DNA of 64,000 nt. It comes from Tubulanus polymorphus (lineage: Eukaryota; Animalia; Nemertea). Below are positions 10,901-50,517 of the stretch, piece by piece. The DNA lies in NCBI RefSeq assembly GCF_964204645.1, contig NC_134030.1, positions 21,536,210-21,600,209 on the forward strand. The letters are read 5' to 3'. Position 1 is the stretch's first letter. Each line of letters opens with the position of its first letter. Made by a program: the position numbers and the translations under genes. The notes beneath the pieces were generated by a model, which saw nothing but the letters and a program-made list of their open reading frames with translations, was not told the origin of the DNA and made no database searches.

Positions 10901-13090
10901 TAACTGTGACTGCAGGGCCGCGATGTTGAATAGAACGCAAACTTTCTCGTACGTACCAGACGCGATCGCTATCAGAATAGAAAACAATAACTCTTCATTC
11001 AACAACATCAGGCTACTGCGGCGATAGAGGATCCACTTGTAGCAATTGAGGATCCACCAGGTGTCACTAGAGTGCAGTAGGACATCAACTACTGCGGCAA
11101 TAGAGGATTCCACTTGTGGCAAGTGAGGATCCACCAGGTGTCACTAGAGTGCAGTAGGACATCAACTACTGCAGCAATAGAGGATTCATCTTGTGGCAAG
11201 TGGGGATCCACCAGGTGTCACTAGAGTGCAGTAGGAAATCAACTACTGCGTCAATAGAGGATTCCACTTGTGGCTAAAGATTCACCAGGTGTCGCTAGTG
11301 TGCAGTAGGACATCAACTACTACGACAATAGAGAAATCCACCTGTGGCAAGTGAGGATCCACCAGGTGTCATTAGAGTGCAGTAGGACATCAACTACAGC
11401 GGCAATAGAGGATCAACTTATGGCAAGTTAGGATCCACCAGGTGTCGCTAATGAACTTACATAAACTCTTTTTGCCTCCGAAGATAGAATCTTTACCGAA
11501 CGCTGAATACCACTTGAAATTGATGCGAATCTGAAAAGAAATTAAAAACTCATCACTGAGGAAAAATGAGTTTTTCCATAGCCTCAAATTTTCGCTGGGA
11601 TAATAATTTCACGAACCTGGTTTTCGGCGATGGGCAGCTTTGACTCGATGGCCGCCAGTTGGTCATAATAGCTGGAATAAAATTACAGATGAAATGCAAG
11701 AATTTTAGGGTATTTCTCCCTTTAAAAAGGAATTCCAGAATTTTAGGGGCTATAGGAACCATGAGTGATCTGATTATTGATCGAACCATTTACAAGAACT
11801 AATAACTACTCTGTCAGTAGTAGGGTCGGAGGTTAATTCAATTGTTTATTGATCATTTTGTTAAAAGGGAATGTTAAACATATCAGATTTCCAAATTCAT
11901 TAAAGTTACAAATTTTTAAAATAAGAAAATACAACTTATAAAACATATATACGTAATCTATAATTATACGGTTATCTATTAAGCCTTAACTTTATTTAAA
12001 AAATCAAGACAGTAATAAAACATTGTATCAGTGACTCATGATAATAAGCACAAAAATGTGAGTTTGACTCACACACAGGACATCACAGAACTGTAATTAG
12101 TAGGTAACCTGCCTGCTGTATTGTAAAAATTATAATCTATACAGAGCAGATTATCGTTTCTTAGTATCTTAAACTCTAATACCGGGCCCTGTCAGTAGTC
12201 TGACCTGAGCACAGGCACTTGAATATGGGCTTTGATAATGGATAAATATTTGATAATTTACCAGCGATACGTTAATCCTACTTTAATAGATCCGCCATGT
12301 TTTAAAATAAATTTACCCATTGTGCAACGCGCGCCGGTCGTTTAGCTATACTATACAGAAAGGCTGGAAACGATCCTATCTCCGTCATGCTTAAATCTAC
12401 CCGCAGTTATCGGGACAGCCGAACACTGCCGATGATTGCCGAAGTACGTCCTTAGTGTCAATTTTAATCCTGAAATATAGGAGCGCCCATGATTTCAATT
12501 GTAGATGATTTTTTTGGAAACATTGACACTGTTTTAGCTCCATTAAAGATTTTAAATGGCAACAAAATTGATTTTTGAAAATTCGCGATGCCTCTTCGGG
12601 ATTGCTGTGACGTCATCTGTCCCGATAACTGCGGGTAGATTTAAGCATGACGGAGATAGGATCGTTTCCAGCCTTTCTGTATAGTATAGCTAAACGACGG
12701 CCGCGCGTTGCATCATGGGTAAATTTATTATAAAACATGGCGGATCTATTAAAGTAGGATTAACGTATCGCTGGTAAATTATCAAATATTTATCCATTAT
12801 CAAAGCCCATATTCAAGTGCCTGTGACCTGAGCCAGAGAAAAGTGAAGGATGGAGCGTGAAGGAAAAAAAAAAGAACTGACCGATTCAAAACGTCTAAAG
12901 TTGACTCGTGTTTATCGGCTAATTTATTGATCACTTGACTCCTCAGTTTGTTGAATTCAACTAAACTCTGTTCGTAATTCTCGGCGGCGACGTTCGCGAA
13001 CGTTGTCGTGATAAATTTCTGAAGCGGTTTCGCGAAATCTACTTCGATCGTCGATTTCGCTGGAACTGACAAATAAACTGCGGCCGCCAT
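772..13090 (-). CDS. PDCD6IP: ALIX / programmed cell death 6-interacting protein (Bro1, V and start of proline-rich domain); 16 exons in window, 3' end continues beyond the left edge
   Basis: Exons with GT-AG ends and consistent phases: 13090-12882, 11671-11617, 11530-11461, 10968-10841, 10380-10227, 10031-9922, 9545-9429, 8146-7924, 6876-6753, 5644-5464, 4723-4502, 3446-3287, 2775-2627, 2012-1878, 1505-1328, 915-772 (~786 codons). ALIX-type motifs: [71 protein letters not shown], and Pro-rich PARPPPPA. Confidence 0.96.
2269..2598. mobile_element. MITE with TIR CATGGTTCCC(G/A)CAG and TSD ATTGTG
   Basis: Inverted termini and a duplicated flank. A near-identical copy lies at 4078-4396. Confidence 0.85.
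3550..3830. mobile_element. piggyBac-like MITE (CCCTTTCAGTGC...GCACTGAAAGGG)
   Basis: TIRs present with TTAA on the right flank. Related copies at 5821-6100 and, partially, 1576-1770 and 9580-9910. Confidence 0.75.
4078..4396. mobile_element. Second copy of the CATGGTTCCC MITE (flanks CTATGTC/CTAAGTC)
   Basis: High similarity to 2269-2598, with TIRs CATGGTTCCCACAG...CTGTGGGAACCATG. Confidence 0.85.
4929..5003 (+). repeat. (TAA)n microsatellite
   Basis: Read directly. Confidence 0.95.
5821..6100. mobile_element. piggyBac-like MITE inserted at a TTAA inside another MITE (host ~5746-6133)
   Basis: TTAA is duplicated at 5817-5820 and 6101-6104. An uninterrupted host element is visible at 61320-61430. 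Confidence 0.85.
6178..6248 (+). mobile_element. tRNA-derived SINE head or tRNA pseudogene
   Basis: A-box-like TGGCATGGTGG and B-box GGTTCGAATCC at tRNA spacing, but no good acceptor stem. Confidence 0.5.
6968..7705 (+). repeat. Tandem repeat, ~7 x 106 bp, in ALIX intron 8
   Basis: ATAAGATATCCTCAGTGAGG recurs at 6985, 7091, 7194, 7300, 7406, 7512 and 7618. Confidence 0.95.
8182..9271 (+). repeat. Tandem repeat, ~20 x 47 bp, formed from a MITE terminus and followed by the MITE body
   Basis: Unit ATATCAGTCATTCCTGGATATAAGGAGTTTTAACAGGGTCCCTACAG runs to ~9102. The body then ends GTAGGGACTCTG, the inverse of CAGGGTCCCTAC. Confidence 0.9.
11020..11450 (+). repeat. Tandem repeat, ~6 x 76 bp, in ALIX intron 3
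   Basis: CCACCAGGTGTCACTAGAGTGCAGTAGGACATCAACTAC recurs about every 76 nt. Confidence 0.92.
12210..12825. mobile_element. Non-autonomous DNA transposon with ~205-bp TIRs in ALIX intron 1
   Basis: 12210-12418 is the reverse complement of 12617-12825. The flank (G)ACCTGAG(C) is duplicated, giving a 7- or 9-bp TSD depending on the end chosen. Confidence 0.9.
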
Positions 13091-13425: not shown

Positions 13426-13684
13426 CGGCAGAAATCCCACAATGACGAAGCCAAGATTGAAAAATTCTATATCAGAATGATTATATTTGGGGAGCGACGT
13501 TTCGGCTAACACCTGTTAGCCATCATCAGGCGTACTGGAAAGTACTCAGTACGCCTGATGTTAGCCGAAACGTCGCTCCTCAAATATAATCATTCTGATA
13601 TAGAATTTTTCAATCTTGGCTTCGTTATTGTGAGATTTCTCTCGTCAATATCATACACGGATATTGTGTATCTTCTCGTCTTAG
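13426..13684. mobile_element. Palindromic Penelope-like miniature element with TSD TACGGTTTT
   Basis: Inverted arms span 13430-13640. TACGGTTTT occurs at 13417-13425 and 13685-13693. A hammerhead core is present on the minus strand. Confidence 0.7.
13494..13531 (-). ncRNA. Minimal type I hammerhead ribozyme motif
   Basis: Minus strand reads gc-CUGAUGA-u-GGCUAAC(aggu)GUUAGCC-GAAA-C-GUC-gc, with a perfect 7-bp stem II and palindromic ACGU in place of stem III. Confidence 0.6.
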
Positions 13685-14601
13685 TACGGTTTTTATCTTG
13701 TCATAATCAAATTTGATTTGGTCTAAATTTTTGAATTTAACACGGCATCAAATTCACTAATCGATTTGTCAATCAACCCAGGAGGTGATTTGATACGATT
13801 TGAATATGGTGAACTGAAACCCATTCATAGGAAATGATATTTCAAAATGCGGGGCTCGAGTTTGTCCCGTTTGGAAGTCGTCAAATTCATCCTGATGTGC
13901 AAATCTTATTACACGTGACTGGCAAATTATAGGCGAATTTATCTTATCAAATCAGATTTGATTTCCTAATCATAATTTGCTAGTCACGGGGAATCTAATC
14001 AAATAAGATTTGCACATCAGGATGAATTTGACGCCTTGTTCCAAACGGCTGACTAGAAAATACTGTCCCACTTTTTAAAAAATCATTTCCTATGAATGAG
14101 TTTCAGGTTTCTCTTTCCGTTTTGACATTTATATCGGTTTTTCGAAAGAAAGCTGTGAGTCTTCCATCTTCAAATCGTATCAAATCACCCGGCCTCCGGG
14201 GGGTGATTGGATGATTTGACAAATCGATTTGAATTTGATACCGTGTTAAATTAAACAATTAGACCCAATCAAATTTGATTATGACAAGATAAAAACGATT
14301 TTTCTTAAAATCAAACTTGATTTGACAAGATAAATTCGTCTTTAAATTGCAGATTCTCTCTGTACAGATATCACACCGGTCGAACGGCTGCACCCGGAGC
14401 GGTCCTCGGAGTCATGCCAAAGACTGGCGAAGGAGCAGTCCCGACTCACGCAATCGATAATCCCGGCCCGTTTGAGGACAGCAGCAGCAAGAATGGATAA
14501 TAATGGTTTCGCAAAGATCTAATTTTTGTTTAAATTTTGTGAGTTTTTATTTTACTACATCGATTACAAGTGAAATAACGACCGGATTTTCGAATTTGAT
14601 T

Positions 14602-16651
14602 CTACTCTTCGTTAACTATGTCACCAAGATTATCAACTTGATTTTTCAAAGATTCTTTTACTGCGTTAACTTCTTCTTTTAGATGTTTGATTTCTTGCTC
14701 TGGATTCATTTCTGCTCCTTGTTGTTCTTCGAATTTCTCTAATTCCGCTGCTACTCCTTCAACCACTTGTTCTTCCTCCTGAAAACAGTAACAGTAACAG
14801 TAACAGTAACAGTAACAGTAACAGTAACAGTAACAGTAACAGTAACAGTAACAGCAACAGTAACAGTAACAGTAACATTAAGTGATGGACCGCTTTGGCG
14901 ATCTTAACACTGTTTAACGATACACAGTTGTTAGATTTTAAAGTTAATGCACATTTGCCGAGGTATCATTAGCGTCTGTATAGTTTGTAGTTAGTTTTTA
15001 GTTCATAATCTTTCCAATAATCGTCCAGCCGAGCCTTGAACGAATTCACAGATGGTGCTTCCACAACTTCTGTCGGCGGACTGTTCCAGTAATTGATAAT
15101 TCTATTCTCTATATCGGTGTGCTTTAGAAAGTTACGTAATTAAAACAGGTATTAAGAGTATAAAGACCAAACAGACCGAACGACCAAACATTTTGTTTCA
15201 CCCTCAGATTGTTTGTTTACTTAAGAGTCATCATCCAATGACTTCGTGCCACCAGCTATCCCGCTAGATGGCGTGCGTAATGTTAGTTTTTAACTGAAAC
15301 TGAAACTGAATTTAACTTTAATTGAAATTTATTTTTGTAACGGGGCCACACGGAGAGACTGAAACAGTCTATCTAAGTCGTTATCACCCAGAAGCATCCA
15401 CACCACATTCATCGCACTCACACATCATGCACACAAGTAATTAACAGGCGAAAAGAAACAACAACAAAAAATGTTTCACATATTACACATTAACATAGGT
15501 TTGTATAGAATGGAAATTTACAAAGTGTTGAATAATGATTTAATGTAGGTACGCTTAAAGGCAGGTTCGCTTTGAATAGTTCGAATTGATTCTGATAGAG
15601 TATTCCATAATAGGGGACCGAATATTTTGACAGAAGATTTTCTAGTTACAGTTCTAAGATAAGGCAATCTTAATTTACATCTATTACGCGTAGGTTTATT
15701 ATGAATTTGATAATTGAAGTTCCAATAGTTGTTAAAGGTCCTAGGCAATTTTGAATTGACGAATTTATGCAAAAAATAGCTAGTTGCAGTTTGTTAATAT
15801 TCTTAATTCTTAGTATATTCCTATAAAATATACGAGGCAAAATGTGTGAATATTTTCCCAGGGGTGGATTTAGGAGGTAGTCTCGGGGTCCGGACCCGGT
15901 TGCCTTCCCACTGCGGTTACCCTTTATTCTACAAGACAAAGATTAGCGTTAAAACCTACAAATTTCACATGTCGTCCCATCAGAATTTGCATATTTTAGA
16001 ACGTGTTCCTTCAGAAATATCCAATACCGAGGGCGGTACCCTGATCGCGGCCTTTGACATGGCCGCTTATCGGAAAAATGGCATTTCTTGTCTTCTGGAT
16101 TCCCAGCTTTCAATCTCCCTAGATTCACCCCTGTTTCCACTTTATGCCCCTATGGCCTACAAAAGGTGCCCTTTTCCCGTGCACCCCCCCCCCCCCACCC
16201 CGATTCAGACACTAGATTACTTACCGGGACCGTCTGTTCAACCTCTTTCCTGTTTGCTTGTTTTTTGCCCTTTTTGTCATTTGCCTTTCCTCCTTTTTTC
16301 TTTCCTTTCTTTGCCTCGACGTTCATGAAAACATCCAAACACACCAATACAACAACAAATACGGCAAATAATTTCAATCTGAAAGAAATCGTAGAAAAAA
16401 AGAAGAATTGTATATTTTCCACTCGCAAGGTTTTCAGTCTGACCCGAGACAGAACTGACATTTCTGTCATCAAGAAAATCGCGACAACAGCTAAACCGCG
16501 TTGTCTTGAAAGAACATTCGCTATTGGCTACTGCTCAGTTTACTAACCAGTTGCCACGACTTACTTTTTAACGAGTACAAATTGAGGAATTTACAATCTT
16601 GAATCTAAGATTTGAGATCGCAGAATGTCGGAACGAAACTTACCCGTTCAT
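14602..16651 (-). CDS. Novel small secreted protein, paralogue 1 (112 aa: signal peptide, Lys-rich block, acidic block, predicted coiled-coil C-terminus)
   Basis: Exons 16651-16644 (ATGAACGG|gtaagt), 16378-16225 (ttcag|...CCG|gtaagt) and 14778-14602 (tttcag|GAG...TAG) splice in frame: MNGLKLFAVFVVVLVCLDVFMNVEA-KKGKKKGGKANDKKGKKQANRKEVEQTVP-EEEQVVEGVAAELEKFEEQQGAEMNPEQEIKHLKEEVNAVKESLKNQVDNLGDIVNEE. TATA box at 16758-16765 and AATAAA at 14547-14552. Confidence 0.8.
14785..15110 (-). mobile_element. CR1-type LINE 3' fragment with (TTACTG)n tail
   Basis: Minus strand translates NRIINYWNSPPTEVVEAPSVNSFKARLDDYW, typical of the CR1 ORF2 C-terminus. A 3' UTR and ~15 TTACTG units (14785-14877) follow. 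Confidence 0.8.
15295..15850 (-). mobile_element. LINE (CR1/L2 group) ORF2 C-terminal fragment and 3' UTR, frameshifted
   Basis: LRIKNINKLQLAIF / HKFVNSKLP..F..YW..N..IH...TR....L.LP..RT......GP.LWNTL...IR.....FK is the usual end of RT-LINE ORF2. A short TTCAGT tail follows. Confidence 0.75.
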
Positions 16652-16724
16652 TTTGACAAATAGATTTCTGCGAACTGCTGCGAGTCTTGAAAGTCTTGGA
16701 AGTCTTGTGTCGAGTCTCTGTTTG

Positions 16725-16783
16725 GAGATTGATGATCTTTCCTACAAATCAGATCAGTTTTTATACCGAAATCCTCCAATCAG
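16725..16783 (-). promoter_or_regulatory. Core promoter of secreted-protein paralogue 1 (mirror copy)
   Basis: Reverse-complement copy of 19671-19730, with the TATA box at 16758-16765. Confidence 0.6.
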
Positions 16784-16929
16784 TGGCCCACCATCTGCAG
16801 AGAGACACGCAGACAGTAACCCCCGTGTGACAGAGTTCAAATACATCACAAATACATCACGTTCACACGTTCATAACAAAAATCCACTTATTGATAGAAT
16901 AAGCCATAAGTTTCTGAAATAATGCTGAC

Positions 16930-18000
16930 AAAATGTCTAATGTCTTGAACAAACGTGAAGCGTAGACGATCAGTTTTTGAAAGTGCGCTGATAAAATGTC
17001 TAATGTCTGGTGTTTGTAGTTCATTTTCAATTGAAAATGTCTCGGGTGAAGCACTGAACACATGTGAAGTGTGGACGATCAGTTTTTGAAAGTGTGCTGA
17101 TAAAATGTCTAATGTCTGGTGTTTGTAGTTCATTTTCAATTAAAAATGTCTCGGGTGAAGCACTGAACACATGTGAAGTGTGGACGATCAGTTTTTGAGA
17201 GTGTGCTGATAAAATGTCTAATGTCTGGTGTTTGTAGTTCATTTTCAATTAAAAATGTCTCAGGTGAAGCACTGAACACATGTGAAGTGTGGACGATCAG
17301 TTTTTGAAAGTGCGCTGATAAAATGTCTAATGTCTGGTGTTTGTAGTTCATTTTCAATTAGAAATGTCTCAAGTGAAGCACTGAACACATGTGAAGTGTT
17401 GACGATCAGTTTTTGAAAGTGTGCTGGTAAAATGTCTAATGTCTGGTGTTTGTAGTTCATTTTCAATTAGAAATGTCTCAAGTGAAGCACTGAACACATG
17501 TGAAGTGTTGACGATCAGTTTTTGAAAGTGTGCTGGTAAAATGTCTAATGTCTGGTGTTTGTAGTTCATGTCCAATTAAAAATGTCTCAAGTGAAGCACT
17601 GAACACATGTGAAGTGTTGACGATCAGTTTTTGAAAGTGTGCTGATAAAATGTCTAATGTCTGGTGTTTGTAGTTCATTTTCAATTAAAAATGTCTCAGG
17701 TGAAGCACTGAACACATGTGAAGTGTGGACGATCAGTTTTTGAAAGTGTGCTGATAAAATGTCTAATGTCTGGTGTTTGTAGTTCATTTTCAATTCATTC
17801 AAATATACACAATTTTCCACATTTTTATCAGGCAATAACATGGGTGAGGAGGCCGCTTGGAGATTCTTTTTTAAAGGGTACGACCGGTATTCGAAATGGC
17901 TTCACTCAAAATGTCGCCAGGGTAGGCTAATTCTGTCAGTTGTCTCAATGCATGTAGATTTGCAAGGTCGTCTTTCAAAAACAGAGAATCACAAATCCTA
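16930..18000 (-). repeat. 109-bp tandem array (~8 copies) plus its conserved ~200-bp 5' flank
   Basis: Unit TTGAAAATGAACTACAAACACCAGACATTAGACATTTTATCAGC...GAGACATTTTTAA. The flank 17790-17998 matches 49415-49615 in reverse. Confidence 0.93.
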
Positions 18001-18494
18001 AGAGCACGAAATGTACTATGAGCCTAAGTCTTTTGCTACGCTATAAGCCTACATTTTAGTTTACATTTATTCTGGAGACTTCTGCTGTCCTTGAACTGGT
18101 GAAATCATCGATTTCGTGAGTCGGGACTGCTCCGGCATCCTCTGGCTGCGGGGAAGGCTCCTTTGAGTTTAGTTTAGACCTCGTAACACCCCCTCCCGCC
18201 CCAGTCATAGTAACGAAATAAAATGTCAAACAGCAATGAATTCGATATTTGAAAAGCGAATATGAATCCTCTGACAAGTGGCTCGCGTTTACCAGCTGTC
18301 CGCCCGTTCGGTCCAACGACTGGTGATTTTCCACCGATTTCATTTCTAACTTATGAACTGTCAACACAATCGCCAGATGTAAAAGTCAAATCAATAGTAC
18401 ATTTTAACCACGGTTCATTGAATTCCATCTTGTAGGATGATGGTAATTCTTACTTTTTAATGAGTACTCTTTTTTACTATTTTATTACCATTTA

Positions 18495-19530
18495 ATCAAA
18501 ACTGATCGTCCACACTTCACATGTGTTTAGAACTTCACCTGAGACATTTTTAATTGAAAATGAACTACAAACACCAGACATTAGACATTTTATCAGCACA
18601 CTCTCAAAAACTGATCGTACACACTTCACATGTGATCAGTGCTTCACCTAAGACATTTCTAATTGAAAATGAACTACAAACACCAGACATTAGACATTTT
18701 ATCAGCACACTCTCAAAAACTGATCGTCCACATTTCACATGTGTTCAGTGCTTCACCTGAGACATTTTTAATTGAAAATGAACTACAAACACCAGATATT
18801 AGACATTTTATCAGCACACTTTCAAAAACTGATCGTCCACACTTCACATGTGTTCAGTGCTTCACCTGAGACATTTTTAATTGAAAATGAACTACAAACA
18901 CCAGATATTAGACATTTTATCAGCACACTCTCAAAAACTGATCGTCCACACTTCACATGTGTTCAGTGCTTCACTTGAGACATTTTTAATTGGAAATGAA
19001 CTACAAACACCAGACATTAGACATTTTATCAGCACACTTTCAAAAACTGATCGTCCACACTTCACATGTGTTCAGTGCTTCACTTGAGACATTTTTAATT
19101 GAAAATGAACTACAAACACCAGACATTAGACATTTTATCAGCACACTTTCAAAAACTGATCGTCCACACTTCACATGTGTTCAGTGCTTCACCTGAGACA
19201 TTTTTAATTGAAAATGAAATACAAACACCAGACATTAGACATTTTATCAGCACACTTTCAAAAACTGATCGTCCACACTTCACATGTGTTCAGTGCTTCA
19301 CTTGAGACATTTTTAATTGAAAATGAAATACAAACACCAGACATTAGACATTTTATCAGCACACTTTCAAAAACTGATCGTCCACACTTCACATGTGTTC
19401 AGCGCTTCACTTGAGACATTTTTAATTGGAAATGAACTACAAACACCAGATATTAGACATTTTATCAGCACACTTTCAAAAACTGATCGTCTACGCTTCA
19501 CGTGTGTTCAAGACATTAGACATTTTGTCA
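18495..19530 (+). repeat. 109-bp tandem array (~9 copies)
   Basis: ORF starts step by exactly 109 nt (18554, 18663, ... 19317). Confidence 0.95.
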
Positions 19531-19670
19531 GCATTATTTCAGAAACTTATGGCTTATTCTATCAATAATTGGATTTTTGTTATGAACGTGTGAACGAGTT
19601 AATTGTGATGTATTTGAACTCTGTCACGCAGGGGTTACTGTCTGCGTGTCTCTCTGCAGATGGTGGGCCA

Positions 19671-19730
19671 CTGATTGGAGGATTTCGGTATAAAAACTGA
19701 TCTGATTTGTAGGAAAGATCATCAATCTCC
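19671..19730 (+). promoter_or_regulatory. Core promoter of secreted-protein paralogue 2 (inverted CCAAT box, TATA box, Inr-like site)
   Basis: ATTGG at 19674-19678, TATAAAAA at 19689-19696 and TCAATC about 30 nt downstream. The ATG lies about 80 nt further on. Confidence 0.6.
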
Positions 19731-19802
19731 AAACAGAGACTCGACACAAGACTTCCAAGACTTTCAAGACTCGCAGCAGTTCGCAGAAATCTATTTATCA
19801 AA

Positions 19803-21775
19803 ATGAACGGGTAAGTTTCGTTCCGACATTCTGCGATCTCAAATCTTAGATTCAAGATTGTAAATTCCTCAATTTGTACTCGTTAAAAAGTAAGTCGTGG
19901 CAACTGGTAAGTAAACTGAGCAGTAGCCAATAGCGAATGTTCTTTCAAGACAACGCGGTTTAGCTGCTGTCGCGATTTTCTTGATGACAGAAATGTCAGT
20001 TCTGTCTCGGGTCAGACTGAAAACCTTGCGAGTGGAAAATATACAATTCTTCTTTTTTTCTACGATTTCTTTCAGATTGAAATTATTTGCCGTATTTGTT
20101 GTTGTATTGGTGTGTTTGGATGTTTTCATGAACGTCGAGGCAAAGAAAGGAAAGAAAAAAGGAGGAAAGGCAAATGACAAAAAGGGCAAAAAACAAGCAA
20201 ACAGGAAAGAGGTTGACCAGACGGTCCCGGTAAGTAATCTAGTGTCTGAATCGGGGTGGGGGGGGGGGGGTGCACGGAAAAAGGCTCTTGTTGGTCATTA
20301 AAGGGCGCCATAAAGTGGGGCAACAAACTCTGGGGGCTCTCCCGAGAAAATTTTGGATTTTTAATGCGATTTTATTGCATTTTGAGCACTTCTCCGAGCA
20401 TTTAACTTTAATCTGCAAACAAAAATGGAAAGGATAACATGAAAAAAGGATTAAGGAATCTTTAGGGCACCCCCTGCACCCCCTTGAATCCGCCCTTGAA
20501 CCTGAAGGCTTGATCTGAAAACAGTCTTACAGTCGCGAGATTTTAGCTAAACTTTAAACCCAGTTCCACATGAGTGGGTCTTATTTGACTGTAGATCCAG
20601 TTCCACATTTGTGAGGGTTTAATTTGACTGTTGATCCAGTTCTACATTTGGGCGGGTTTAATTTGACTCTGAACCAAGTTCCACATGAGTGGGCCTTATT
20701 TGACTGTGGATCCAGTTCCACATTTGTGAGGGTTTAATTTGACTGTTGACCAGTTCCACATTTGGGCGGGTTTAATTTGACTCTGAACCAAGTTCCACAT
20801 GAGTGGGCCTTATTTGACTGTGGATCCAGTTCCACATTTGTGAGGGTTTAATTTGACTGACGACCAGTTCCACATTTGGGCGGGTTTAATTTGACGCTAA
20901 ACCGAGTTCCACATGAGTGGGTCTTATTTGACTGTGGATCCAGTTCCACATTTGTGAGGGTTTAATTTGACTGTTGATCCAGTTCCACATTTGGGCGGGT
21001 TTAATTTGACTCTAAACCCAATTCCACACGAGTGGGTCTTATTTGACTGTGAATCCAGTTCCACATCTGTGAGGGTTTAAATTGACTGTTGATCCAGTTC
21101 CACATTTGGGCGGGTTTAATTTGACACTGAACCCCGTTTTGAATAGTATGGGTTAAACTTGAGTCTGGATCCAGTTCCACAGTTAGGTTGGTTGATTCCA
21201 CTCTGAAACCAGTTTTACAGTTGTGTGGGTTTAATTTTAATGTGTGGGTTTAATTTGTGGAATTTACGAGAAAGTAAAATGTCAAGTCTATAAAAGGACT
21301 TGTTCGGACGTTGCGCTTTTTCAAAGCGGTAATCGCCGAGTTCTGTAGAAAAATGAAGGTCCCCAACTGGACCGGTTTAGGCGGATTAATCTACTGTAAT
21401 ACACGTCAAAAAATTATACGATAAAAATGGAAAATATTCATTTTCATTTTGTATCGTCCATAGGAGATAGAACCAGAAGTGGTCGAGGAAGAACCAGCAG
21501 TGGTCGAGGAAGAACCAGCAGTGGTCGAGGAAGAACCAGCAGTGGTCGACGAAGAACCAGAAGTGGTCGAGGAAGAACCAGCAGTGGTCGACGGAGAACC
21601 AGCAATGGTCGAGGAAGAACCAGCAATGGTCGACGATGCACCAGGATCAGAACCAGAATTAGAAGAAGGATCAGAAATCGTCGAAGATGAGTCGGATGTC
21701 GTTCAACTAGAAGACGTTAAAGGCGCTTTGGAAGAGCAAGTTGAAAATCTTGATGGTATAATCAACAAACATTAA
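19803..21775 (+). CDS. Novel small secreted protein, paralogue 2 (157 aa: signal peptide, Lys-rich block, (VVEEEPA)n acidic repeat, predicted coiled-coil C-terminus)
   Basis: Exons 19803-19810, 20076-20229 and 21464-21775 splice in frame. The first 54 aa match paralogue 1 except one E/D change. They are followed by EIEPE, about 7 VVEEEPA-type units, and ...LEDVKGALEEQVENLDGIINKH*. TATAAAAA at 19689-19696 and AATAAA at 21824-21829. Confidence 0.82.
20559..21190 (+). repeat. Minisatellite of ~38-bp monomers arranged as a three-monomer (~114 bp) higher-order repeat
   Basis: CCAGTTCCACAT is followed cyclically by GAGTGGG-, TTGTGAGGG- and TTGGGCGGG- variants. Confidence 0.85.
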
Positions 21776-22926
21776 ATCAAATCGAATATGCGGTCGTTTT
21801 TTCATTTGTAATCGATGAAGTGAAATAAAACTGAAAACGAATAAAAAACCAAAATCTAGATCTATTTTTGTGAAATCATTACTTGATTTATTCTGGAGAC
21901 TTCTGCTGCTGCTCCGGCATCCTCCGGCTGCGGGGAAGGCTCCTTTGAGTTTCGAATTCAGTCACAGGGAGAAAAAAAAACAAATAAACAGCAAATTCAA
22001 ATTTACAATTTTTCAACAAGCGCAATATAAAAAGTGGCAGAGAAAGAAAAGCTTCCGTATCGACCGAACAACTTGAGGCTGCTGTCGCAATGAGGCAAAA
22101 GATCCGCCGGCGAAGGAAACCGGGAAGGAACCTAGGGAATGAAATGAGAATTCAAAAAATATCGTAAATTTAAGTGGAGTATACTTAAGTTATTTAGCCA
22201 AGTTCAGAAGAATGAGGAAATATAACAATTAGGGTTGATTTTTCATTGATGGATAGTACTAACCGGGCGGAGGGTAAGCCCGGGTCACGTGAGCCTGTCA
22301 GTCTCGATAAGAAAAGGTGAGTTTTTGCCAGATGAACGTTTTGAGGTGAATTTTGATGCGGGTTGGGCGGTACTTGTATTGAAAATAAAGAATATGCGTC
22401 TTCTAATTAGAATGTTTTTTAATGTTGGCGAATCGAGACCGGCCTCGGGTTCGGCGAGCCGACCGCATGAAGTGTCCGGTTCGCAGCCATTCCACAAACC
22501 GGACCGTTGGTCCGACCCTTGGTCCGAATATTCAGCCTCAGACAGGCTAAATAGGAAAAGGCAAAATAAAATGATAGAAATTAAAACACATTTACAATAA
22601 ACTTTTTGCTTTATACATTAGTTGCATATTACTTTGCGTTCGACTTTAGATCCGTTAGGCTCGTACACCGGACCAACAGTCCGCGTCTATGTCCGCACTG
22701 ATCTGTGTTTCTGCCGTTCGTCGTTCGAAGTTTTGCAGAGAAATATAGATAGCTTTTTTGTCGACGGATTAACAAAATAAAGGAATATGTGTCGAAAGTG
22801 AATGTAAAGCGCGTATGCAATGGAGACGCACATTTGATTTCGGAAGCTCCCTTATATATTTACACTGATTTGGAGGAGCAGATTCCTAGCGAGGTGAGGC
22901 TCCAGCAGCAGCAGCAGCGGGGTACG

Positions 22927-23350
22927 GGTGGTCTACCGAGATGATGTATTTTACCGAGATCAACCGAGATGAAATTAAATATAACATATTTATTTATTCC
23001 TTATCGATTTTAACACTTGTAATCATGTTATATCAGTAATGAATACCTTCTTGAGTCATATTTTACATATTTTTTTATTTTAAAAAATTTTGACTTCAAA
23101 AACGTAAACTCGGTTAGCAATAAAATTTCATTGAATTTGATTGATCGACGATCTCATCTCGGTAAAGTTAAAAGTTATTTTTCCAAAAATATCCGACTAA
23201 ATATGTAAAATATGAACCCAGCAGGCATTTATTACTGATATAATATGATTTCAATTGTAAAAATCGATATGGAATAAATAAATATGTTATATTTAATTTC
23301 ATCTCGGTTCATCTCGGTAAAATACGTCATCTCGGTAATAAGGATGACCG
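22927..23350. mobile_element. Long-TIR non-autonomous element upstream of TMEM169
   Basis: 22936-23071 mirrors 23200-23338, with GGGGTA on both flanks. Confidence 0.75.
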
Positions 23351-28201: not shown

Positions 28202-31200
28202 TCAGCGAGTTCTCAAAACCCGTTTATTTCTAGCACGAATAGATTTAACATCAATAGTGAGGATGGTGTAAAGAAGTGGATTCAGTGACGAGTTGATCGG
28301 TAGGAAAAGTACCGCCAACCAAGCCGCCACTTGGTTCGGTATTTCTACTCGCAATACAGCGCAAAACTGAACGATGATTATCGGTAACCAGCAAAATAAA
28401 TTACACAGATTTATCACTAAACTCCTACGTGCCAGAATCAATTCGGTAGGATCAGCTCTACCCGAGCCGGACCTGCTTCCAGATACGAGTCTATACATCT
28501 GTGCATACGTCATCATTATTGTAGCAAGTACGACCGAGTTAAACGCGGCAAATATAGCGAATGAGTATTGCCAGGCGTGGACATTGATGGATAGTAAATT
28601 CATAGGTAAACAAACGCCAGTTGTGCCGTAAAAGTTATTTCCGAAATAAGTAGATGACGATAGCGGTAGCATTGAAATGATGCTTAAAATGATCCAACAT
28701 ATGCAACAAATACCGGATACAGATTTCAAAGATATAATTGGGCTTGCAGAAAATGGATTGACGATATTCGAGTATCTTTGACGGGTTAGAATGAGCAGAA
28801 AAGTCAAAGATCCCTCGCACGAAAGAGTCACTATAATCCCGGCGAGTCGACACAATGAACTATCTGTCCAACTTTCAGAATTTAAGAAATAAACACCTTT
28901 ATAGACGTAATCGGCTCCTGCGATCAGAAACAGATAAATCGACATCAGGAAATCACAGGAGGCAATATTAATGATGAGGATATCCGAAGATGTGTTACGT
29001 GATTCAGAGGTTGAAATTCGAAGTGCTTGAACGCGAATTAAAATGACAATTATGTTCGCAACAAAGCTGAATGAAGCGATCGCCCAAATGATTGCTCTAA
29101 GAACAGTGTTACCCATCAGGTCGGAACAAGATGAAAATTGGTCGGCTTTCGGGAGACACTGGTCAACATTCGGAACCATGCAACAAAATTTGTACGCGTC
29201 AGAAGCCAAAGAACTTAATAATGTAAGTCTGTCAAACACGGTTCTCACTACGGATATGACTTTCGAATTTTTGGTTAGATCCAGATTTCTAAGTTTCGTT
29301 AATCCAGAAAATGCGTCTGGTAAAATGTAATTGATTTTGTTATTGCTAATGTTTAACGACTTTAAAGCGGATAAACCATTGAACACATTTCCACCGAGTA
29401 ATGACAAAGAAAGTCCGTGAAGATCGAGATCGCTTAATGACTTTAAACCTTGAAAACTGTCTTCTTCTAAATAACTCACTGGATTCCCAAAAAGCAAGAG
29501 CATTTTCAAACTATACAAACCGGCGAATGTATTCGCGATCAATGATATTATGCGGTTATATGTAAGATCTAATGTATGTAGATTATGTAGGTTTAAGAAC
29601 GAGTTTGGAACAATATAAGACAAATTGTTACGTGAAATATTGAGGAGATGTAGATAGAGGTAAGAAGAAAACGTGGACTCATTGAATACAACTCGGTTTT
29701 CTGATAAAATCAGAACTCGAGTTGATGCCGAGAAAAGATCAGTAATTTCTACTAAACCAGCATCATCGCAATCAATTAGATGACCTTGACATTTACAATA
29801 CTCAGGACACGTGATGTTACAGTAAGACTCGTCATCAGTGGTACGTTTACAATTTATAACACCATCACAAACTTCAGATTGAGGTATACATCGGTTTTCC
29901 TGGCCACATTTGAACATGCCGGGACATGATAAAGTCTCGCAGTTTCGCTCGTCTTCTGAATTAGGACAATCTGATCGACCATCGCACACCTGTCCCATTG
30001 GTATACAGTAAGATGCTGGACATTTTACAGTACCAGCTGGACATTTGAAATCAGTACAACCTTGTATATGTTCGAGCCTTCTACATACCGGGTAACCAAT
30101 CGGCATCCTTTCTAAAATACATCTATGACCTCTAGCATAACAATGAGGAGAATCGAAAGAACATCTTTGTTCATCAGATTTCTTACATAAGTTTGTGAAG
30201 TTAGTCGTGCAGTAGTTCTCATCATTACAGTGAACTGTAGGATTCACTATAACATTCGATGTTAAAAGTTCATCTTCTTGGAGGCTTCCGCTACAATCTA
30301 CAACACCATCCCGATTCAATAGAGAACTGATACATTCACCGCTGTTACATAGAAACCCGTTGCAAAGTTGCGGACCACACTCCCGCTCGTCGGAGCCGTC
30401 CTTACAGTTAACGATTCCATCACATCGGTACGATCTATCCACACATTGACCACTAGTACAGCGGAATTGTTGGGGCAAACACGGGGGATGAAAACAGGAG
30501 TTCTCATCAGAACCATCCAAACAATCCTTAATGAAATCACAGAATCCACTTATTGATATAACTCGTCCATCTGAACAGTGGAACTGACTGTGTAAGTTTG
30601 AACCCGAACAATCGAGTTCATCTTCACCGTGTTGACAGTCGTTTCTGGTATCACATACGCGATGGTCGCTGATACATCTTTGATCATTACATTTAAACTG
30701 CCACGATTTACAACCGCTTATAGAAGCCAACTCTTCACCAGTTACATTATAGGAACATAGCACGGAATGAACGTTGTTTGTCCGATTATTCCACTGTTTT
30801 ATCGACCATCTCAACGACTCGATAAAAGTTATTCCATCCCTTGTCAAAACTGGTTCGATCACTTGAAACATTTTCCTAGCATCCATAGTCAGTATAGCGC
30901 CATATTGGTGTTTAAAACTGAACGCGTCAATTAATGCTTTTATTTCATTTTCCACGTGATTAGCTACAATGCCTATTTCAGCGTGAAGGTCACGACACAT
31001 TTTCGTAGCGCTTCGAATATCCAAACTTCGATTGTTGTTCCAATCTGTGAGCATTTGACAACATTTGCCGTCCACATTTTGCCAACCTCTTTTACAAGTC
31101 GAGTCATTGGTTGTATTGGAATTTAGAAAATTTTTATTTCCAGTTAGAAATACGATATCGTTATGAGTATCAGTTATTTCTAGGATAGTCGTTGTATTTT

Positions 31201-34200
31201 GATTTTCAACTGTCGAATTATCCACGCGTTCTGAATCGACGTCAATTCTATCCGATTCACAAATGAAAGTTGTTCGAGTCTCCTCGATTTGACACGGGAA
31301 TCGAACCCAGTTCGCTGATCCTCGTGGATTATTCAGTATCATCGCCGCACACAGCATATTGACGTCATTTATCGGTTGTTTTCGTAGAGGAGATATCAAT
31401 CCTGGAATAACTTCTGGTATCGTTTCGTTTATCATAGCAGGTTTAAACCACTCTGTGTAGCTCAATGGTTTGCCATCAGTCCACGTGTAATAACCATTAT
31501 TCTGTTAAGATAGAATTCATTTTCATTTATCGACTGCAAAAAATGGTTTCAGCATTTTTATTAACCACTTAATTAACCATTAACGATTCAAAAACTTAAC
31601 TACTATTAGCGTTAAAAACCCCACTCCATGGCAATGTCACGCCGGGAGTGACAGAGAAAACCTGAAATATGGTCGTGGTCACTTTACAGGTGACTAGCCT
31701 ACTGACCTAATTTTCCGTTAGATGGCGAACTAGTCGAGTTTAGTATTTTCTACATTTGACCATTCAACTACTGTTAAAAGTTTAGGGCATTCAAATCTTT
31801 TGTCTGAAGTCAAGTTAAATCAAATAGTCAGTTACAGTACTTTATATTTTATTATCCTTTTCAATATTGTTTGCATTAATTCTGTTTGGTAATTTATATC
31901 AATTTAGAGTCTTTCGATTTGAATTTATTGTACATTTTACAATCTTCTGCATTAATTAATTCCACAATTAATCACATTTATCATGAATCTTTTGGTTTCG
32001 AATCCGCGTAATATTTGTTCATTTTTCTTTTCTCTCACTATTTCATGTAGAAGTTACCTTGAGTTTTAGCCCGATCATCATTATAAGCGCCTCCTGGGTA
32101 TATCCCTTTCTAAGCAGATTCGTGGCGAATAACCTTTTGACAGAAATCATTTCATCTTGTGAGTTGATACTGAGAAGATGTCCTCCGTATTTCTGTCTAC
32201 AGTAACTTGCAGCATTCTCCCAATTCAGACGTTCATCTCTGATGTATTTGACGCAGGAAATTCCCGAATCTAGAAATCCTGATTTACAGCTGATATCATC
32301 AAACTTTTTTTTTGTTAACTTTTCTAAATTGTATTGTATTTGAAATTTGGGAACGCGACCTCTTATCTCAAAATACAAATCATTGTCGATCAAACTATGG
32401 AATACACTTCCACGTTTAGCATTAGTTCTGCATAATTTTTTTTGATGGAAGGTTCCGCTTATCCGTTGCTTTAAAAGAACTGGGTCTTTGTCCGATAGAG
32501 ATGATTTAGTGCACGGTGTGATCTGAATAAATTTGATTACGAATCTGTAATATTGAAATCGATTATTTTCCATTGGGTTTTCAAAGCTATAATATAAAGA
32601 TGTCAAACTCTCCGATCCAAATCCCGGATAGTTCGGTGATTGTAAGATTCCACATTCATCCCTATCCGGGAAAAACGAAAAACCAAATGAATATGTTGTA
32701 CGCTTTTTCTCTACTTGGCATTTGCGACGCAGTTTAACTATCAATTCTCTTTGCCAGAATTCATATTTGTAGAACAATTTCAAAGTGTTTAATACTAAAC
32801 TGTTATTGAGAAACTGATTAGATAAACTCATTTGCCTATCACATGTTCTACTCGTGTATCGCGCAGGAAAACATGCGTCAATTTGATATTCATATTCTGA
32901 TAATATATTAATGTTTTCTAAAGGAAGGCGCCGGTTTTCGGGTGTAATCACGAGACAGTGCGACGTCATTTTGATCTGATTTTCTTCTTCCTGTAAAACA
33001 TACCCGTCGCAGTCAGTAGGATTGAATCTGAGAGAACGACTTGATTTCGAACTGATGATTGGTGTTACTAGTTGTGGAATCCAATTATCCCAGTTATAAG
33101 CGTATCCTACTACAGTAACCGGTCCTCCTGATGTAATCAAACTGACGACGCTGCGACCGAACCACAGACCATCAGGACAATACGGACCATAGCGTCTAGC
33201 TGTAAAATTACCACCATCATATATATAAAATCCAGCTCTCTCGCACGTCTCTGATAAAACTGTTAGTTTGAAATTATCCTCATAGATATCAACTTTCCGT
33301 TTAAATTCGTATGTATTTATACGATACATTAATGTTGTCTTCTGTGACGTCGGGAACAGAAAGCGAGGATGTAAACCGTAACCGGAGCCAGATATCTACA
33401 AAATATGAAAAATTCATCAGAAAAAATATAAGTATTTTATCATTGAAAGAAATATTAACAGAATTATTTTCATAATTTTCAAATAGATTTTTTTCTAAAA
33501 TTTTCCCTTTTTCGCAATGTTAAAAATGATTTCAAAATTATTATTCAAAGATTTATTTCAATTTCCACTTTTGTTTTAGCAAGTGTTTTTGTCATATTTA
33601 TTTTTTCTATTACAATTCATTTTCTGTGCTTTATATCTAATTTAGATGAAGCCGAGTAGTTACTTTAACTTACCCTGGGTTTGCGGACTTGTACGTCTCC
33701 TATTGAAATAGATTTCACTTCAAATTCAATTTTTACATTCGATTGTAAAACACCTAGTCTTATTAAAACGCACAGTATGACGAGAAAGCCGTCAGATTTA
33801 ACACTCAGTGATTCCAGGTAGTTGTAACCGAGTAAAATATCAGTTCCTACAACGCGTAACCCTTCTAGTTTATATACACCAATGACGTCACCGGATGTGC
33901 TGAGATCACGTGTCCAGTTGAAGACGACGTACTGTAACACCTGCACTGTGATAGACCAGCAGTGTAAGTGTTTTGATCGAGTTATTACGTGTAAACTGTT
34001 GTCATCAGGAATGAGCACTCCTGACTCGTTATTAAAGATTCGAATCAACGGATTAGAGACGTTCCAATCAGATATTCTATACACCTGAACTGATAGTTGT
34101 GTGCTAACGCGTCGGCCTCGTAGCAAACTGATAATAGCTCTGTTAGTTTTAGTATAAAACGATGAAGGGGGATGTCCGGTTTGTTCTGATATAACAGCTA

Positions 34201-38927: not shown

Positions 38928-41900
38928 TCAGCGAGTTCTCCAAACCCGTTTATTTCTAGCACGAATAGATTTGACATCAATAGTGAGGATGGTGTAAAGA
39001 AGTGGATTCAGTGACGAGTTGATCGGTAGGAAAAGTACCGCCAACCAAGCCGCCACTTGGTTCGGTATTTCTACTCGCAATACAGCGCAAAACTGAACGA
39101 TGATTATCGGTAACCAGCAAAATAAATTACACAGATTTATCACTAAACTCCTACGTGCCAGAATCAATTCGGTAGGATCAGCTCTACCCGAGCCGGACCT
39201 GCTTCCAGATACGAGTCTATACATCTGTGCATACGTCATCATTATTGTAGCAAGTACGACCGAGTTAAACGCGGCAAATATAGCGAATGAGTATTGCCAG
39301 GCGTGGACATTGATGGTTAGTAAGTTCATAGGTAAACAAACGCCAGTTGTGCCGTAAAAGTTATTTCCGAAATAAGTAGATGACGATAGCGGTAGCATTG
39401 AAATGATGCTTAAAATGATCCAACATATGCAACAAATACCGGATACAGATTTCAAAGATATAATTGGGCTTGCAGAAAATGGATTGACGATATTCGAGTA
39501 TCTTTGACGGGTTAGAATGAGCAGAAAAGTTAAAGATCCCTCGCACGAAAGAGTCACTATAATCCCGGCGAGTCGACACAATGAACTATCTGTCCAACTT
39601 TCAGAATTTAAGAAATAAACACCTTTATAGACGTAATCGGCTCCTGCGATCAGAAACAGATAAATCGACATCAGGAAATCACAGGAGGCAATATTAATGA
39701 TGAGGATATCCGAGGATGTGTTACGTGATTCAGAGGTTGAAATTCGAAGTGCTTGAACGCGAATTAAAATGACAATTATGTTCGCAACAAAGCTGAATGA
39801 AGCGATCGCCCAAATGATTGCTCTAAGAACAGTGTTACCCATCAGGTCGGAACAAGATGAAAATTGGTCGGCTTTCGGGAGACACTGGTCAACATTCGGA
39901 ACCATGCAACAAAATTTGTACGCGTCAGAAGCCAAAGAACTTAATAATGTAAGTCTGTCAAACACGGTTCTCACTACGGATATGACTTTCGAATTTTTGG
40001 TTAGATCCAGATTTCTAAGTTTCGTTAATCCATAAAATGCGTCTGGTAAAATGTAATTGATTTTGTTATTGCTAATGTTTAACGACTTTAAAGCGGATAA
40101 ACCATTGAACACATTTCCACCGAGTAATGACAAAGAAAGTCCGTGAAGATCGAGATCGCTTAATGACTTTAAACCTTGAAAACTGTCTTCTTCTAAATAA
40201 CTCACTGGATTCCCAAAAAGCAAGAGCATTTTCAAACTATACAAACCGGCGAATGTATTCGCGATCAATGATATTATGCGGTTATACGTAAGATCTAATG
40301 TATGTAGATTATGTAGGTTTAAGAACGAGTTTGGAACAATATAAGACAAATTGTTACGTGAAATATTGAGGAGATGTAGATAGAGGTAAGAAGAAAACGT
40401 GGACTCATTGAATACAACTCGGTTTTCTGATAAAATCAGAACTCGAGTTGATGCCGAGAAAAGATCAGTAATTTCTACTAAACCAGTATCATCGCAATCA
40501 ATTAAATAACCTTGGCATTTACAATACTCAGGACACGTGATGTTACAGTAAGACTCGTCATCAGTGGTACGTTTACAATTTATAACACCATCACAAACTT
40601 CAGATTGAGGTATACATCGGTTTTCCTGGCCACATTTGAACATGCCGGGACATGATAAAGTCTCGCAGTTTTGCTCGTCTTCTGAATTAGGACAATCTGA
40701 TCGACCATCGCACACCTGTCCCATCGGTATACAGTAAGATGCTGGACATTTTACAGTACCAGCTGGACATTTGAAATCAGAACAACCTTGTATATGTTCG
40801 AGCCTTCTACATACCGGGTAACCAATCGGCATCCTTTCTAAAATACATCTATGACCTCTAGCATAACAATGAGGAGAATCGAAAGAACATCTTTGTTCAT
40901 CAGATTTCTTACATAAGTTTGTGAAGTTAGTCGTGCAGTAGTTCTCATCATTACAGTGAACTGTAGGATTCACTGTAACATTCGATGTTAAAAGTTCATC
41001 TTCTTGGAGGCTTCCGCTACAATCTACAACACCATCCCGATTCAATAGAGAACTGATACATTCACCGCTGTTACATAGAAACCCGTTGCAAAGTTGCGGA
41101 CCACACTCCCGCTCGTCGGAGCCGTCCTTACAGTTAACGATTCCATCACATCGGTACGATCTATCCACACATTGACCACTAGTACAGCGGAATTGTTGGG
41201 GCAAACACGGGGGATGAAAACAGGAGTTCTCATCAGAACCATCCAAACAATCCTTAATGAAATCACAGAATCCACTTATTGATATAACTCGTCCATCTGA
41301 ACAGTGGAACTGACTGTGTAAGTTTGAACCCGAACAATCGAGTTCGTCTTCACCGTGTTGACAGTCGTTTCTGGTATCACATACGCGATGGTTGCTGATA
41401 CATCTTTGATCATTACATTTAAACTGCCACGATTTACAACCGCTTATAGAAGCCAACACTTCATCAGTTACATTGTAGGAACATAGCACGGAATGAACGT
41501 TGTTTGTCTGATTATTCCACGGTTTTATCGACCATTTCAACGACTCGATAAAAGTTATTCCATCCCTTGTCAAAACTGGTTCGATCACTTGAAACATTTT
41601 CCTAGCATCCATAGTCAGTATAGCGCCATATTGGTGTTTAAAACTGAACGCGTCAATTAATGCTTTTATTTCATTTTCCACATGATTAGCTACAATGCCT
41701 ATTTCAGCGTGAAGGTCACGACACATTTTCGTAGCGCTTCGAATATCCAAACCTCGATTGTTGTTCCAATCTGTGAGCATTTGACAACATTTACCGTCCA
41801 CATTTTGCCAACCTCTTTTACAAGTCGAGTCATTGGTTGTATTGGAATTTAGAAAATTTTTATTTCCAGTTAGAAATACGATATCGTTATGAGTATCAGT

Positions 41901-47220: not shown

Positions 47221-49414
47221 GTTCTTCGTTGTATTCGGTGTGAAATTAAATAAATTTTCTTACGATGAAATTCTGATTTTGTTAAAATCCTTTAAATCAA
47301 GTTCTTTATATCCAAGTATAAATCCAAAAATCAGTCCGTCGTGGACTAGGATCGGTTTTAACTTAAACCCCGGGCTCCAGTTGCACAAGTCATCTTTAAA
47401 CTCATCTTTAATCCCGAGACTGGTTGTAAGATTTCTTGAAGATTTCTTGGTCTAGAATTTAAGCAACTTATGACTGTACACAACTGACTTCTGAGGTCAG
47501 TTCATGGCTTAGATTTAAGCTCAGACTAAAACCCTCTTAGTTGTATAGTCGACTGTGACTGTCGTGACTGTGGCGACTGGCCCTGAATTACTCGCTATGA
47601 GCCAATTGAGTTAACAAAAGGGCCAACAATAAAACCAGCCTAGGTTTATAGTTAGCTCCAGTTCGAACGAACCTTTGAGCAACTGAGCCCGGTTTTAAGT
47701 CGGCTCCAAAGTTTCTGTGCAACACGTCAGTTACTGGGCGTTGGTTTTGTAGTCAAATGAAAAATATCTAGAAACTTTGAATTACTATGATATTAGATAT
47801 ATGCAGGTAGATATGTATTTTGAAACGAGGAATGATGATTCAGAGGAATCGATCGGGTTTTAGATATCAGGATAGATGAGATGGTGGTTGTTTGAAGTTC
47901 TCTCTAATTAACTTCGAAGCCTTCGGGGCTATATACGCATCGGAACGAGCAACTATCGAGCGGCGAAGTTGAACATATAATTTACAAGCCGAGCAAATGA
48001 CAAGAAGTTGAAAAGTTCATAGATCTTCAATACACGCATTTCGTATATCAACTACTGGTTTTGAAACTTACAGTACAAACCGTATCCTAGGTTACAGCTT
48101 CATTCTGGGATTCTCCGTTTGTCAAATGCGCAAAATGTTTTCAAAGTTTTCCGTCCGAAATACAATTTCGCTCCCGGATTCGCCATTGAAAATATTGATG
48201 TAAAAATCGGAAGCTTTTACAGAATTGCAGAAAGTTACGAACTGGGGTTACATGAATTAACAAATAAGATAGAAAGAAAAAGAATAAACGATCAAGAAAA
48301 CAATCTAAACAGTTTATTGGCGCTTTGAAAAAATAACATTGCTTATGTTGACGACAATAAATAATATAATATCGATTATACAATATTAAGGATCATAAAG
48401 TTTTTTTGGATATGAATATATCGATAGTTGAATTGAATTGACCGGCAACCAGTCTAGTTCCGATTTATTGATGACGTAATGCATACATTTTCGAAAAAGA
48501 TTTTTAAAAATTTATCAAAAATGAAATAAGAGTTAGGAAATATATTTCTAACGGTTTTAACGCGGTAAAAAAAAACAAAACCATACATTAATTGTAGATC
48601 TCCCGTCAGTACGTAGACGGGTTGCACTTCAGTTTTGGTTTTTTAATTCGTCATTATTGAATTACACGATTATTGATGAACAAGAAGATAAAAAGAAAAG
48701 AATGAACATAGAATTTCACACTGAGCTACAAAGGGAAAGAACTATTTACAGGTAGTCGGAATACATCATAAATGTTTATGTTGTATAAAGGTTGCATCAT
48801 TCCATTTCATTCATAATCACTGCCCTCATTTTAGTTCCAGGTGTTACCAACCGCACAGGGTTACAGTCATTTTTTTACCCGGAGTGGCAACCTATCAATG
48901 AATTATTATATGATATACATTTTGTTTGTACATAACTGTTAATTATTCTATATTAATGAAATAAACATTACATTACATCGCATTAGGCGGATCCGTGTTC
49001 CGAAAGTTCTCTGACATTGATATTAAATGATATTAATGACTAAACTAACCACAAAATTCAAATATTTATCGATTGCTGTTTCGGCGTCTGCCTGAAAGTA
49101 CTGTTATAGGTACGTACTCTTCTTATGAATGAAATCATTTTCTCTCAAACGCAAATAAGTTATATCTCTGTAAAACACTGCGCTTAACTCCATTCTGCTC
49201 AAATTTCTGGATGCGCCCCGTGTATATTACAAAGAAAGAAAGAAAGATATCAATTCTCTGCGTTGAAGTTCTCTTTCATAGTACGTAGAAGTTTGCGCCA
49301 AATTTCCCTTTTAGATGCCATTTGTCCCGTCTTAAATTTTCGATTTAAATGAAGCCCACTTATTAAGCTTGTCGTTTATTTATTTGTGAGTTTTGTGTGT
49401 TTCTAATTCATTTT

Positions 49415-50142: not shown

Positions 50143-50517
50143 CTGCCAGAAATTACTTTAATCAATGCGCATTTTTTATCGATGCATTTTCCATTTAAAT
50201 ACATATATAGAAAATTAATCATGCTTGGAAAACACTGCGCTCACATTTCTGGATCCATCCCTGGTTACTATTTCATATACAATTTGAATTATCAATTTGT
50301 TAAAAACCACCGCCACAAATCTATCAATTTTATGATTTACATATCTCGAGAATTAATAAATACCGTATCTTAACCGATGATAATGAATGCTATAATCGAT
50401 ATAGGTTTAGTTAAGGGACAACATATGATTATCGTGGTATTTACAAACTTTGAATTTTGAATTTTTTGAATTGTGTTTTTTTCTATTTGATTTTATTTGT
50501 CTTGAGTAAATCATTTA

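Follow-up and report, generated by a model that had tools for sequence, protein, structure and literature searches.

The 5' parts of the human fetal G-gamma- and A-gamma-globin genes, introns included, are nearly identical while their 3' parts have diverged, with the boundary at a simple-sequence (TG)n tract in intron 2 (intervening sequence 2, IVS2). Partial conversion in these genes was reportedly described by Slightom, Blechl and Smithies in 1980. Here we describe a pair of genes of similar outline in the palaeonemertean ribbon worm Tubulanus polymorphus, located at 14.4-22.0 kb of a 64-kb stretch of contig NC_134030.1 (hereafter the window) in a genome of 268 Mb and 77 contigs; the comparison rests on this one assembled genome. 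The globin pair is the closest formal analogue, since in both cases a near-identical 5' part that includes introns gives way to a diverged 3' part at simple sequence within intron 2. However, the globin genes are direct tandem repeats with their edge at (TG)n, whereas the T. polymorphus genes are inverted head-to-head, have their edge at a G-run, and encode what appear to be orphan secreted proteins.

Other described systems share different aspects of this arrangement. In Caenorhabditis elegans, a common 5' region of fog-2 and ftr-1 converts while a distinct 3' end persists despite conversion, and the hsp16 genes form head-to-head inverted modules around a spacer of a few hundred bp, with identical or near-identical arms attributed to conversion and tracts that extend into introns (PMC3966223). 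The fog-2/ftr-1 pair is in tandem, and fog-2 acquired its 3' end from new sequence; the genes described here are inverted and have 3' ends of old common descent. In hsp16 the identity of the arms covers the whole module, whereas here only part is homogenised. Conversion between closely linked inverted duplicates is also known for Drosophila Hsp70, amylase and trypsin genes, for C. elegans antimicrobial-protein genes and for Y-chromosome palindromes (PMC3199776). All of these resemble the present locus in being inverted around a short spacer, with homogenisation that includes non-coding DNA. Palindromes of the Y chromosome are 10 kb to megabases long, and exceed 99.9% identity over the whole arm. 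They are thus homogeneous from end to end, in contrast to the 0.78 kb of a ~3.5-kb ancestral arm seen here, and the locus is similar in working to Y-type palindromes but is not of that class.

The two genes have three exons each in a mirror-image layout, and their arms contain a tract of very high identity. In inverted orientation, 16170-16854 matched 19600-20284 at 99% (blastn), with eight substitutions over 685 ungapped nt (98.8% identity); with the adjoining satellite arrays included, 16170-17795 matched 18661-20284 at 97.4%. The substitutions were spread over the upstream and promoter sequence (3/103), the 5' untranslated region (UTR; 1/100), intron 1 (2/265), exon 2 (1/154) and the start of intron 2 (1/55), with none in exon 1, and the only amino-acid change was in exon 2, E in the left product and D in the right, from a GAG/GAC codon difference at 16237/20217. 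This bore out the claim of a first-pass annotation of this DNA that promoter, exons 1 and 2 and intron 1 are near-identical with a single E/D change. Introns and promoter were as alike between the arms as the exons, indicating that the similarity is independent of coding constraint. Apart from a small cluster of indels and substitutions at 16852-16859, this similarity extended to the array edge, so that the full tract (16170-16945 and 19511-20284) measured ~0.78 kb, or 1.6 kb with satellite.

The outer edge of the tract was sharp. A sliding identity profile of the arms, which the same annotation had proposed as a check, gave 49-50 matches per 50 columns from the array edge to 16212/20242, 44/50 across the block containing the G-run, and at most 27/50 with heavy gapping outward from 16161/20289. 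Divergence is therefore not uniform along the gene, and the profile is that of a plateau followed by a sharp drop. Identity ended within a few nt at 16170/20284, which is 55 nt into intron 2 and 14 nt past a G4TG13 run that is the same in both arms (20253-20270, and 16184-16201, where the forward strand reads C13AC4). The collapse noted earlier at 50-90 nt into intron 2, past the G-run, was correctly placed, but the coordinates given for the run were slightly off and the run is equally long in both arms. Likewise, the outer boundary of the tract had been recognised, but not that the high identity also stops inward, at the start of the satellite arrays. The step in divergence was from 8/685 inside to 30/141 outside (Fisher p = 9e-18), or from 1.2% in the tract to ~21-26% in alignable sequence outside it.

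Beyond the edge, the arms retain a much more diverged homology. The first 36 nt past the boundary still aligned at ~74% (z = 4; 2/300 shuffles reached the score). In exon 3, BLASTP aligned only a 17-residue C-terminal stretch (9/17 identical), while tblastn gave ~30% identity over ~66 columns, with the left exon aligning to the C-terminal two thirds of the right (homology z = 9.7). An arrangement of alternative cassettes, with both exon-3 types in either arm, was rejected because the sole and weak counterpart of each exon 3 was the other one. Nei-Gojobori estimates for exon 3, which are rough given the short and uncertain alignment, were ~0.65 synonymous (dS) and ~0.51 nonsynonymous (dN) substitutions per site (dN/dS ~0.8), and on these rough figures the exon-3 tail would evolve almost neutrally. 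The end of exon 3 (last 15 codons) together with the 3'UTR was 78.7% identical over 141 columns (blastn, 14515-14651 against 21863-21726), and the local alignment of the 3'UTRs had z = 26, with the first ~60 nt ~88% identical. The earlier description of a barely alignable exon 3 and a moderately diverged 3'UTR thus agreed with what we found, ~30% protein identity and 79-88% identity respectively. The 3'UTRs (~79-88%) were also better conserved than the exon-3 synonymous sites (dS ~0.65), and this better-kept 3'UTR may represent either a functional 3'UTR element or a patch that was converted separately at an earlier time.

The non-repeat parts of intron 2 showed no homology between the arms (alignment z ~0), and the repeats in this intron differ from arm to arm. 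The left intron carries a dispersed repeat at 15859-16134 (~276 bp, ~72% to more than 100 copies), younger dispersed repeats at 15338-15819 (87-95%) and 14882-15106 (94-98%), and an (AACAGT)16 microsatellite at 14784-14881 (Tandem Repeats Finder, TRF), all of which are absent from the right arm. The right intron contains a dispersed 39/115-bp satellite at ~20530-21240 (20551-21181), which belongs to a genome-wide family of at least 767 candidate copies at ~76-83% identity. The collapse of identity described in the first-pass annotation is therefore real, but much of it is replacement by repeats present in one arm only. Three levels of divergence coexist at this one locus: the 5' module differs by ~1% and the 3'UTR by 12-21%, and intron 2 and most of exon 3 are saturated.

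We favour an inverted duplication of old date, with a 5' module that was recently homogenised by non-allelic, arm-to-arm gene conversion, and put the probability of this reading at roughly 0.6. The tract has the features expected of gene conversion, in that it is much closer than the flanking paralogous sequence, has a sharp edge and shows similarity independent of coding. The old duplication would have included the 3'UTR and some downstream flank, and conversion between the arms would later have made ~0.78 kb nearly identical, between the array edge and a point 55 nt inside intron 2. On its outer side the tract meets G4TG13 and then a diverged intron filled with one-arm-only repeats, and either the G-run or the missing homology may have stopped it; on its inner side it would be bounded by the satellite array, turning over on its own. 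Both genes would then be expressed from equivalent promoters. The first-pass annotation further suggested that the two products would be co-regulated and that recombination between the arms might flip the spacer. An old inverted duplication with its inner part homogenised by conversion or re-duplication had already been proposed for this locus, and it fits both the even identity within the tract and the diverged homology outside it. The features of the locus are listed in Table 1.

Table 1. Features of the head-to-head gene pair, in window coordinates
Feature	Coordinates	Strand	Remarks
Element X, left copy	14432-14487	+	downstream of left gene
Left gene 3'UTR	14515-14601	-	AATAAA at 14551-14546; best-kept part of old homology
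Left exon 3	14602-14778	-	58-aa acidic tail and TAG stop; residues 55-112 of XP_074653692.1
Left intron 2	14779-16224	-	~3/4 repeats without counterpart in right arm
Left high-identity module	16170-16945	-	start of intron 2, exon 2, intron 1, exon 1, 5'UTR, promoter, upstream sequence
Left exon 2	16225-16378	-	from sequence and translation
Left intron 1	16379-16643	-	from sequence and translation
Left exon 1, coding	16644-16651	-	from sequence and translation
Left TATAAAAA (TATA box)	16765-16758	-	in high-identity module
Left 109-bp satellite array	16946-17795	+	7.8 units (TRF)
Spacer	17796-18497		702 nt, not palindromic
Element X, spacer copy	18065-18170	-	in spacer
Right 109-bp satellite array	18498-19510	-	9.3 units (TRF); inverted relative to left array
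Right high-identity module	19511-20284	+	promoter, exon 1, intron 1, exon 2, first 55 nt of intron 2
Right TATAAAAA (TATA box)	19689-19696	+	in high-identity module
Right exon 1, coding	19803-19810	+	ATG at 19803; GTAAGT donor
Right intron 1	19811-20075	+	from sequence and translation
Right exon 2	20076-20229	+	from sequence and translation
Right intron 2	20230-21463	+	beyond tract: unique 20285-20520, satellite ~20530-21240, unique up to acceptor
Right exon 3	21464-21775	+	103-aa acidic tail, TAA stop; 21-nt repeat x8.4 (TRF); conserved C-terminal helix motif
Right gene 3'UTR	21776-21863	+	AATAAA at 21824-21829
Element X, right copy	21886-21952	-	downstream of right gene

Several points weigh against conversion as the full account. 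Beyond the first unit the arrays are out of register between the arms, with no visible sign of exchange running through them; no protein is recorded for the right gene; and, in a single genome, a recent partial re-duplication in inverted orientation would look the same. In addition, a patch in the spacer is nearly identical to the right downstream flank, which simple conversion does not explain and which hints at a more complex rearrangement. The patch belongs to a short element (X) found at this locus only. Its spacer and right-flank copies are in direct orientation and, apart from a 39-nt gap, identical at 66/67 positions, while the left copy is inverted and 82% identical to the spacer copy (blastn); a three-way alignment gave a common reading frame (GAVPTH.ID). 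The three copies suggest that the centre of the palindrome holds a templated insertion or a third partial copy.

The near-identical flank patch would be better accommodated by the re-duplication just mentioned, in which fold-back or template switching would have pasted the array, promoter and exons 1-2 over the 5' part of the other paralogue and left a composite spacer. The spacer is indeed a patchwork: 18065-18170 resembles a templated insertion, and 17796-18001 (206 nt) is sequence flanking the left array that recurs at 89% identity at 49413-49613. Array and flank together recur at 49413-50143 of the window (array 49614-50143) at 89-95%, and the inverted satellite arrays could have served as switch points. 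However, neither microhomology at the junctions nor a terminal signature was detected, and the diverged homology runs straight across the outer boundary, as if an existing paralogue had been overwritten in place, which is the same outcome as conversion. A fresh fold-back should have no older homology past its junction, but here the 36 nt beyond the boundary, exon 3, the 3'UTR and the flank are all homologous. We regard recent re-duplication as doubtful, though it survives better than the other alternatives.

The first-pass annotation had seen in the pair a "constant-variable design". This was overstated, given the two-member family and the near-neutral tail (rough dN/dS ~0.8), and the constant-variable pattern is probably a by-product of partial gene conversion. 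It seems improbable to us that the pair is selected as a constant-variable unit, with G4TG13 and the array confining repeated conversion to the promoter and the signal/cationic module. In such a unit the G4TG13 run, 24 nt after the exon-2 donor, could form a sense-strand G-quadruplex in both genes, and the genes would be co-regulated with an N-terminus in common while their acidic tails were free to diversify.

Assembly errors arise easily in short palindromes with near-identical arms, in homopolymer runs and in satellites, and cross-arm read mapping during polishing or a fold-back chimera might have produced the structure. We consider an artefact of this kind very unlikely. The arms differ by eight substitutions, a small indel cluster and array lengths of 7.8 against 9.3 units, and their outer halves, which carry distinct third exons and distinct repeats, have nothing of the likeness of the inner part. 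The assembled contig reaches 23 Mb, and an independent RefSeq model of the left gene crosses the boundary. A typical long read would also exceed the ~7.5 kb of the whole head-to-head structure.

The arrays inside the arms belong to a 109-bp satellite dispersed genome-wide, which the first-pass annotation had missed. At least 1098 candidates were detected in more than 100 places at 94-98% identity, as short arrays (0.4-1.5 kb) on several chromosomes, concentrated around the window at 20.2-22.7 Mb of contig C6 and present also on C8, C9, C10, C12 and C22. At six other loci sampled, the flanks were not shared with this locus, nor the immediate flanks among themselves. Because the satellite is dispersed in this way, the similarity of the two arrays says little about the palindrome. 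Diagnostic variants common to both arrays were found only in the promoter-proximal unit, and even these units differ at 8/109 positions; variants in the other units are common mainly within an arm. The satellite has probably spread with some mobile element.

A mobile element with this satellite could conceivably have picked up the 5' module and moved it to a second site: the module adjoins a satellite dispersed as short arrays over at least six contigs, and array and flank have a further local copy. We rate this as remoter even than an assembly artefact. The 268-Mb genome has just two copies of the 685-nt module and of exon 2, and because of this copy number the module is not a mobile repeat; moreover, the array flanks differ at the other loci sampled, and old homology persists outside the module. 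Finally, purifying selection on the signal peptide, basic block and promoter with no recent exchange, for which the functional 5' elements in the module and the one conservative change in exon 2 might speak, deserves practically no credence and cannot explain the pattern, because intron 1 (2/265) and the start of intron 2 (1/55) are as identical as exon 2 (1/154) while exon 3 has dS ~0.65, and selection would not freeze a whole intron.

Read as partial gene conversion, the locus adds a further case to a known phenomenon and involves no new mechanism. It provides a clean, small case of partial concerted evolution in Nemertea, a phylum with almost no such data, and illustrates the framing of exchange tracts by repeats. 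It also calls for caution in the annotation and dating of duplicates.

The gene model of the first-pass annotation was correct for the left gene, the product of exons 1, 2 and 3 being residue for residue RefSeq XP_074653692.1 (LOC141907848, 112 aa, uncharacterized protein). A model without intron 1, using an in-frame ATG inside it, was rejected, as it gave a poorer signal peptide and is not the choice of RefSeq. The (AACAGT)16 microsatellite adjoins the left exon-3 acceptor, and on the gene strand, as (ACTGTT)n, it forms the pyrimidine-rich tract of that acceptor. For the right gene, searches of the public protein collection with its exons singly found no protein of 57-196 aa with its sequence. 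The right gene signals are nevertheless intact (open frame, GT-AG introns, TATA box and AATAAA), and from these signals it is probably a gene that annotation has missed, encoding an orphan secreted protein.

In each predicted product a signal peptide is followed by a Lys-rich block of 29 residues (net +9) and then by an acidic tail, with a net tail charge of -13 in the left product (58 aa) and -39 in the right (103 aa). The right tail carries EEPAVVE-like units, encoded by 8.4 copies of a 21-nt repeat. In an AlphaFold model of the left protein, made without an alignment, the signal is helical, the basic block disordered and the tail folded into two helices, of which the C-terminal one has a predicted local distance difference test (pLDDT) score above 90.

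Searches with these sequences returned no relatives. Nothing in Pfam matched any of the three exons above cut-offs; a Conotoxin match (E = 0.029) scored 15.8 bits, short of the 25.1-bit cut-off. A word search of 5.8 billion clustered proteins with the right exon 3 and the full left protein returned only the left protein itself, and an exhaustive HMMER search of 1.84 billion representatives with the left exon 3 gave no homologue beyond it. A 1555-aa repetitive protein matched by HMMER to the left exon 3 was rejected as compositional or coiled-coil similarity; its own Pfam matches are spurious, no single stretch passing. Look-alikes in the ESM Atlas scored at most 0.77 and were uninformative. 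With exon 2 and the module each at two copies in the genome, the family comprises just these two members, and by these searches both products are orphan proteins.

Conotoxin and amphibian antimicrobial peptide precursors are alike in combining an identical signal and N-terminal block with a fast-diverging C-terminal part, and in carrying oppositely charged blocks. Unlike in those precursors, there are here two genes and no cysteine framework, the constant part is cationic and the variable part acidic. With no Pfam domain above cut-off, two genomic copies and no relatives, the signature of a conotoxin-like or antimicrobial-like superfamily was not found. As a guess from composition, the products could be secreted polyampholytes, either components of a mucus, adhesive or coacervate, or antimicrobial-peptide-like precursors in which the acidic part neutralises the basic part.

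The pair lies among ordinary animal genes, namely a BRO1-domain gene, TMEM169 and duplicated LDLa-LRR-7TM receptors. The latter are two open frames of 1087 aa on the reverse strand (28202-31465 and 38928-42191), relaxin/LGR-like receptors with LDLa, LRR and 7TM domains that form a direct duplicate ~10.7 kb apart. An Rfam scan of 13-23 kb, spacer included, found no family. Fold-back elements (inverted-repeat, similar to miniature inverted-repeat transposable elements) surround the locus at 12210-12825, 13430-13640, 13689-14350 and 22934-23337. A nested fold-back set sits between the promoter of the BRO1 gene and the left gene, and one of the flanking elements has 209-nt arms of 97.6% identity.

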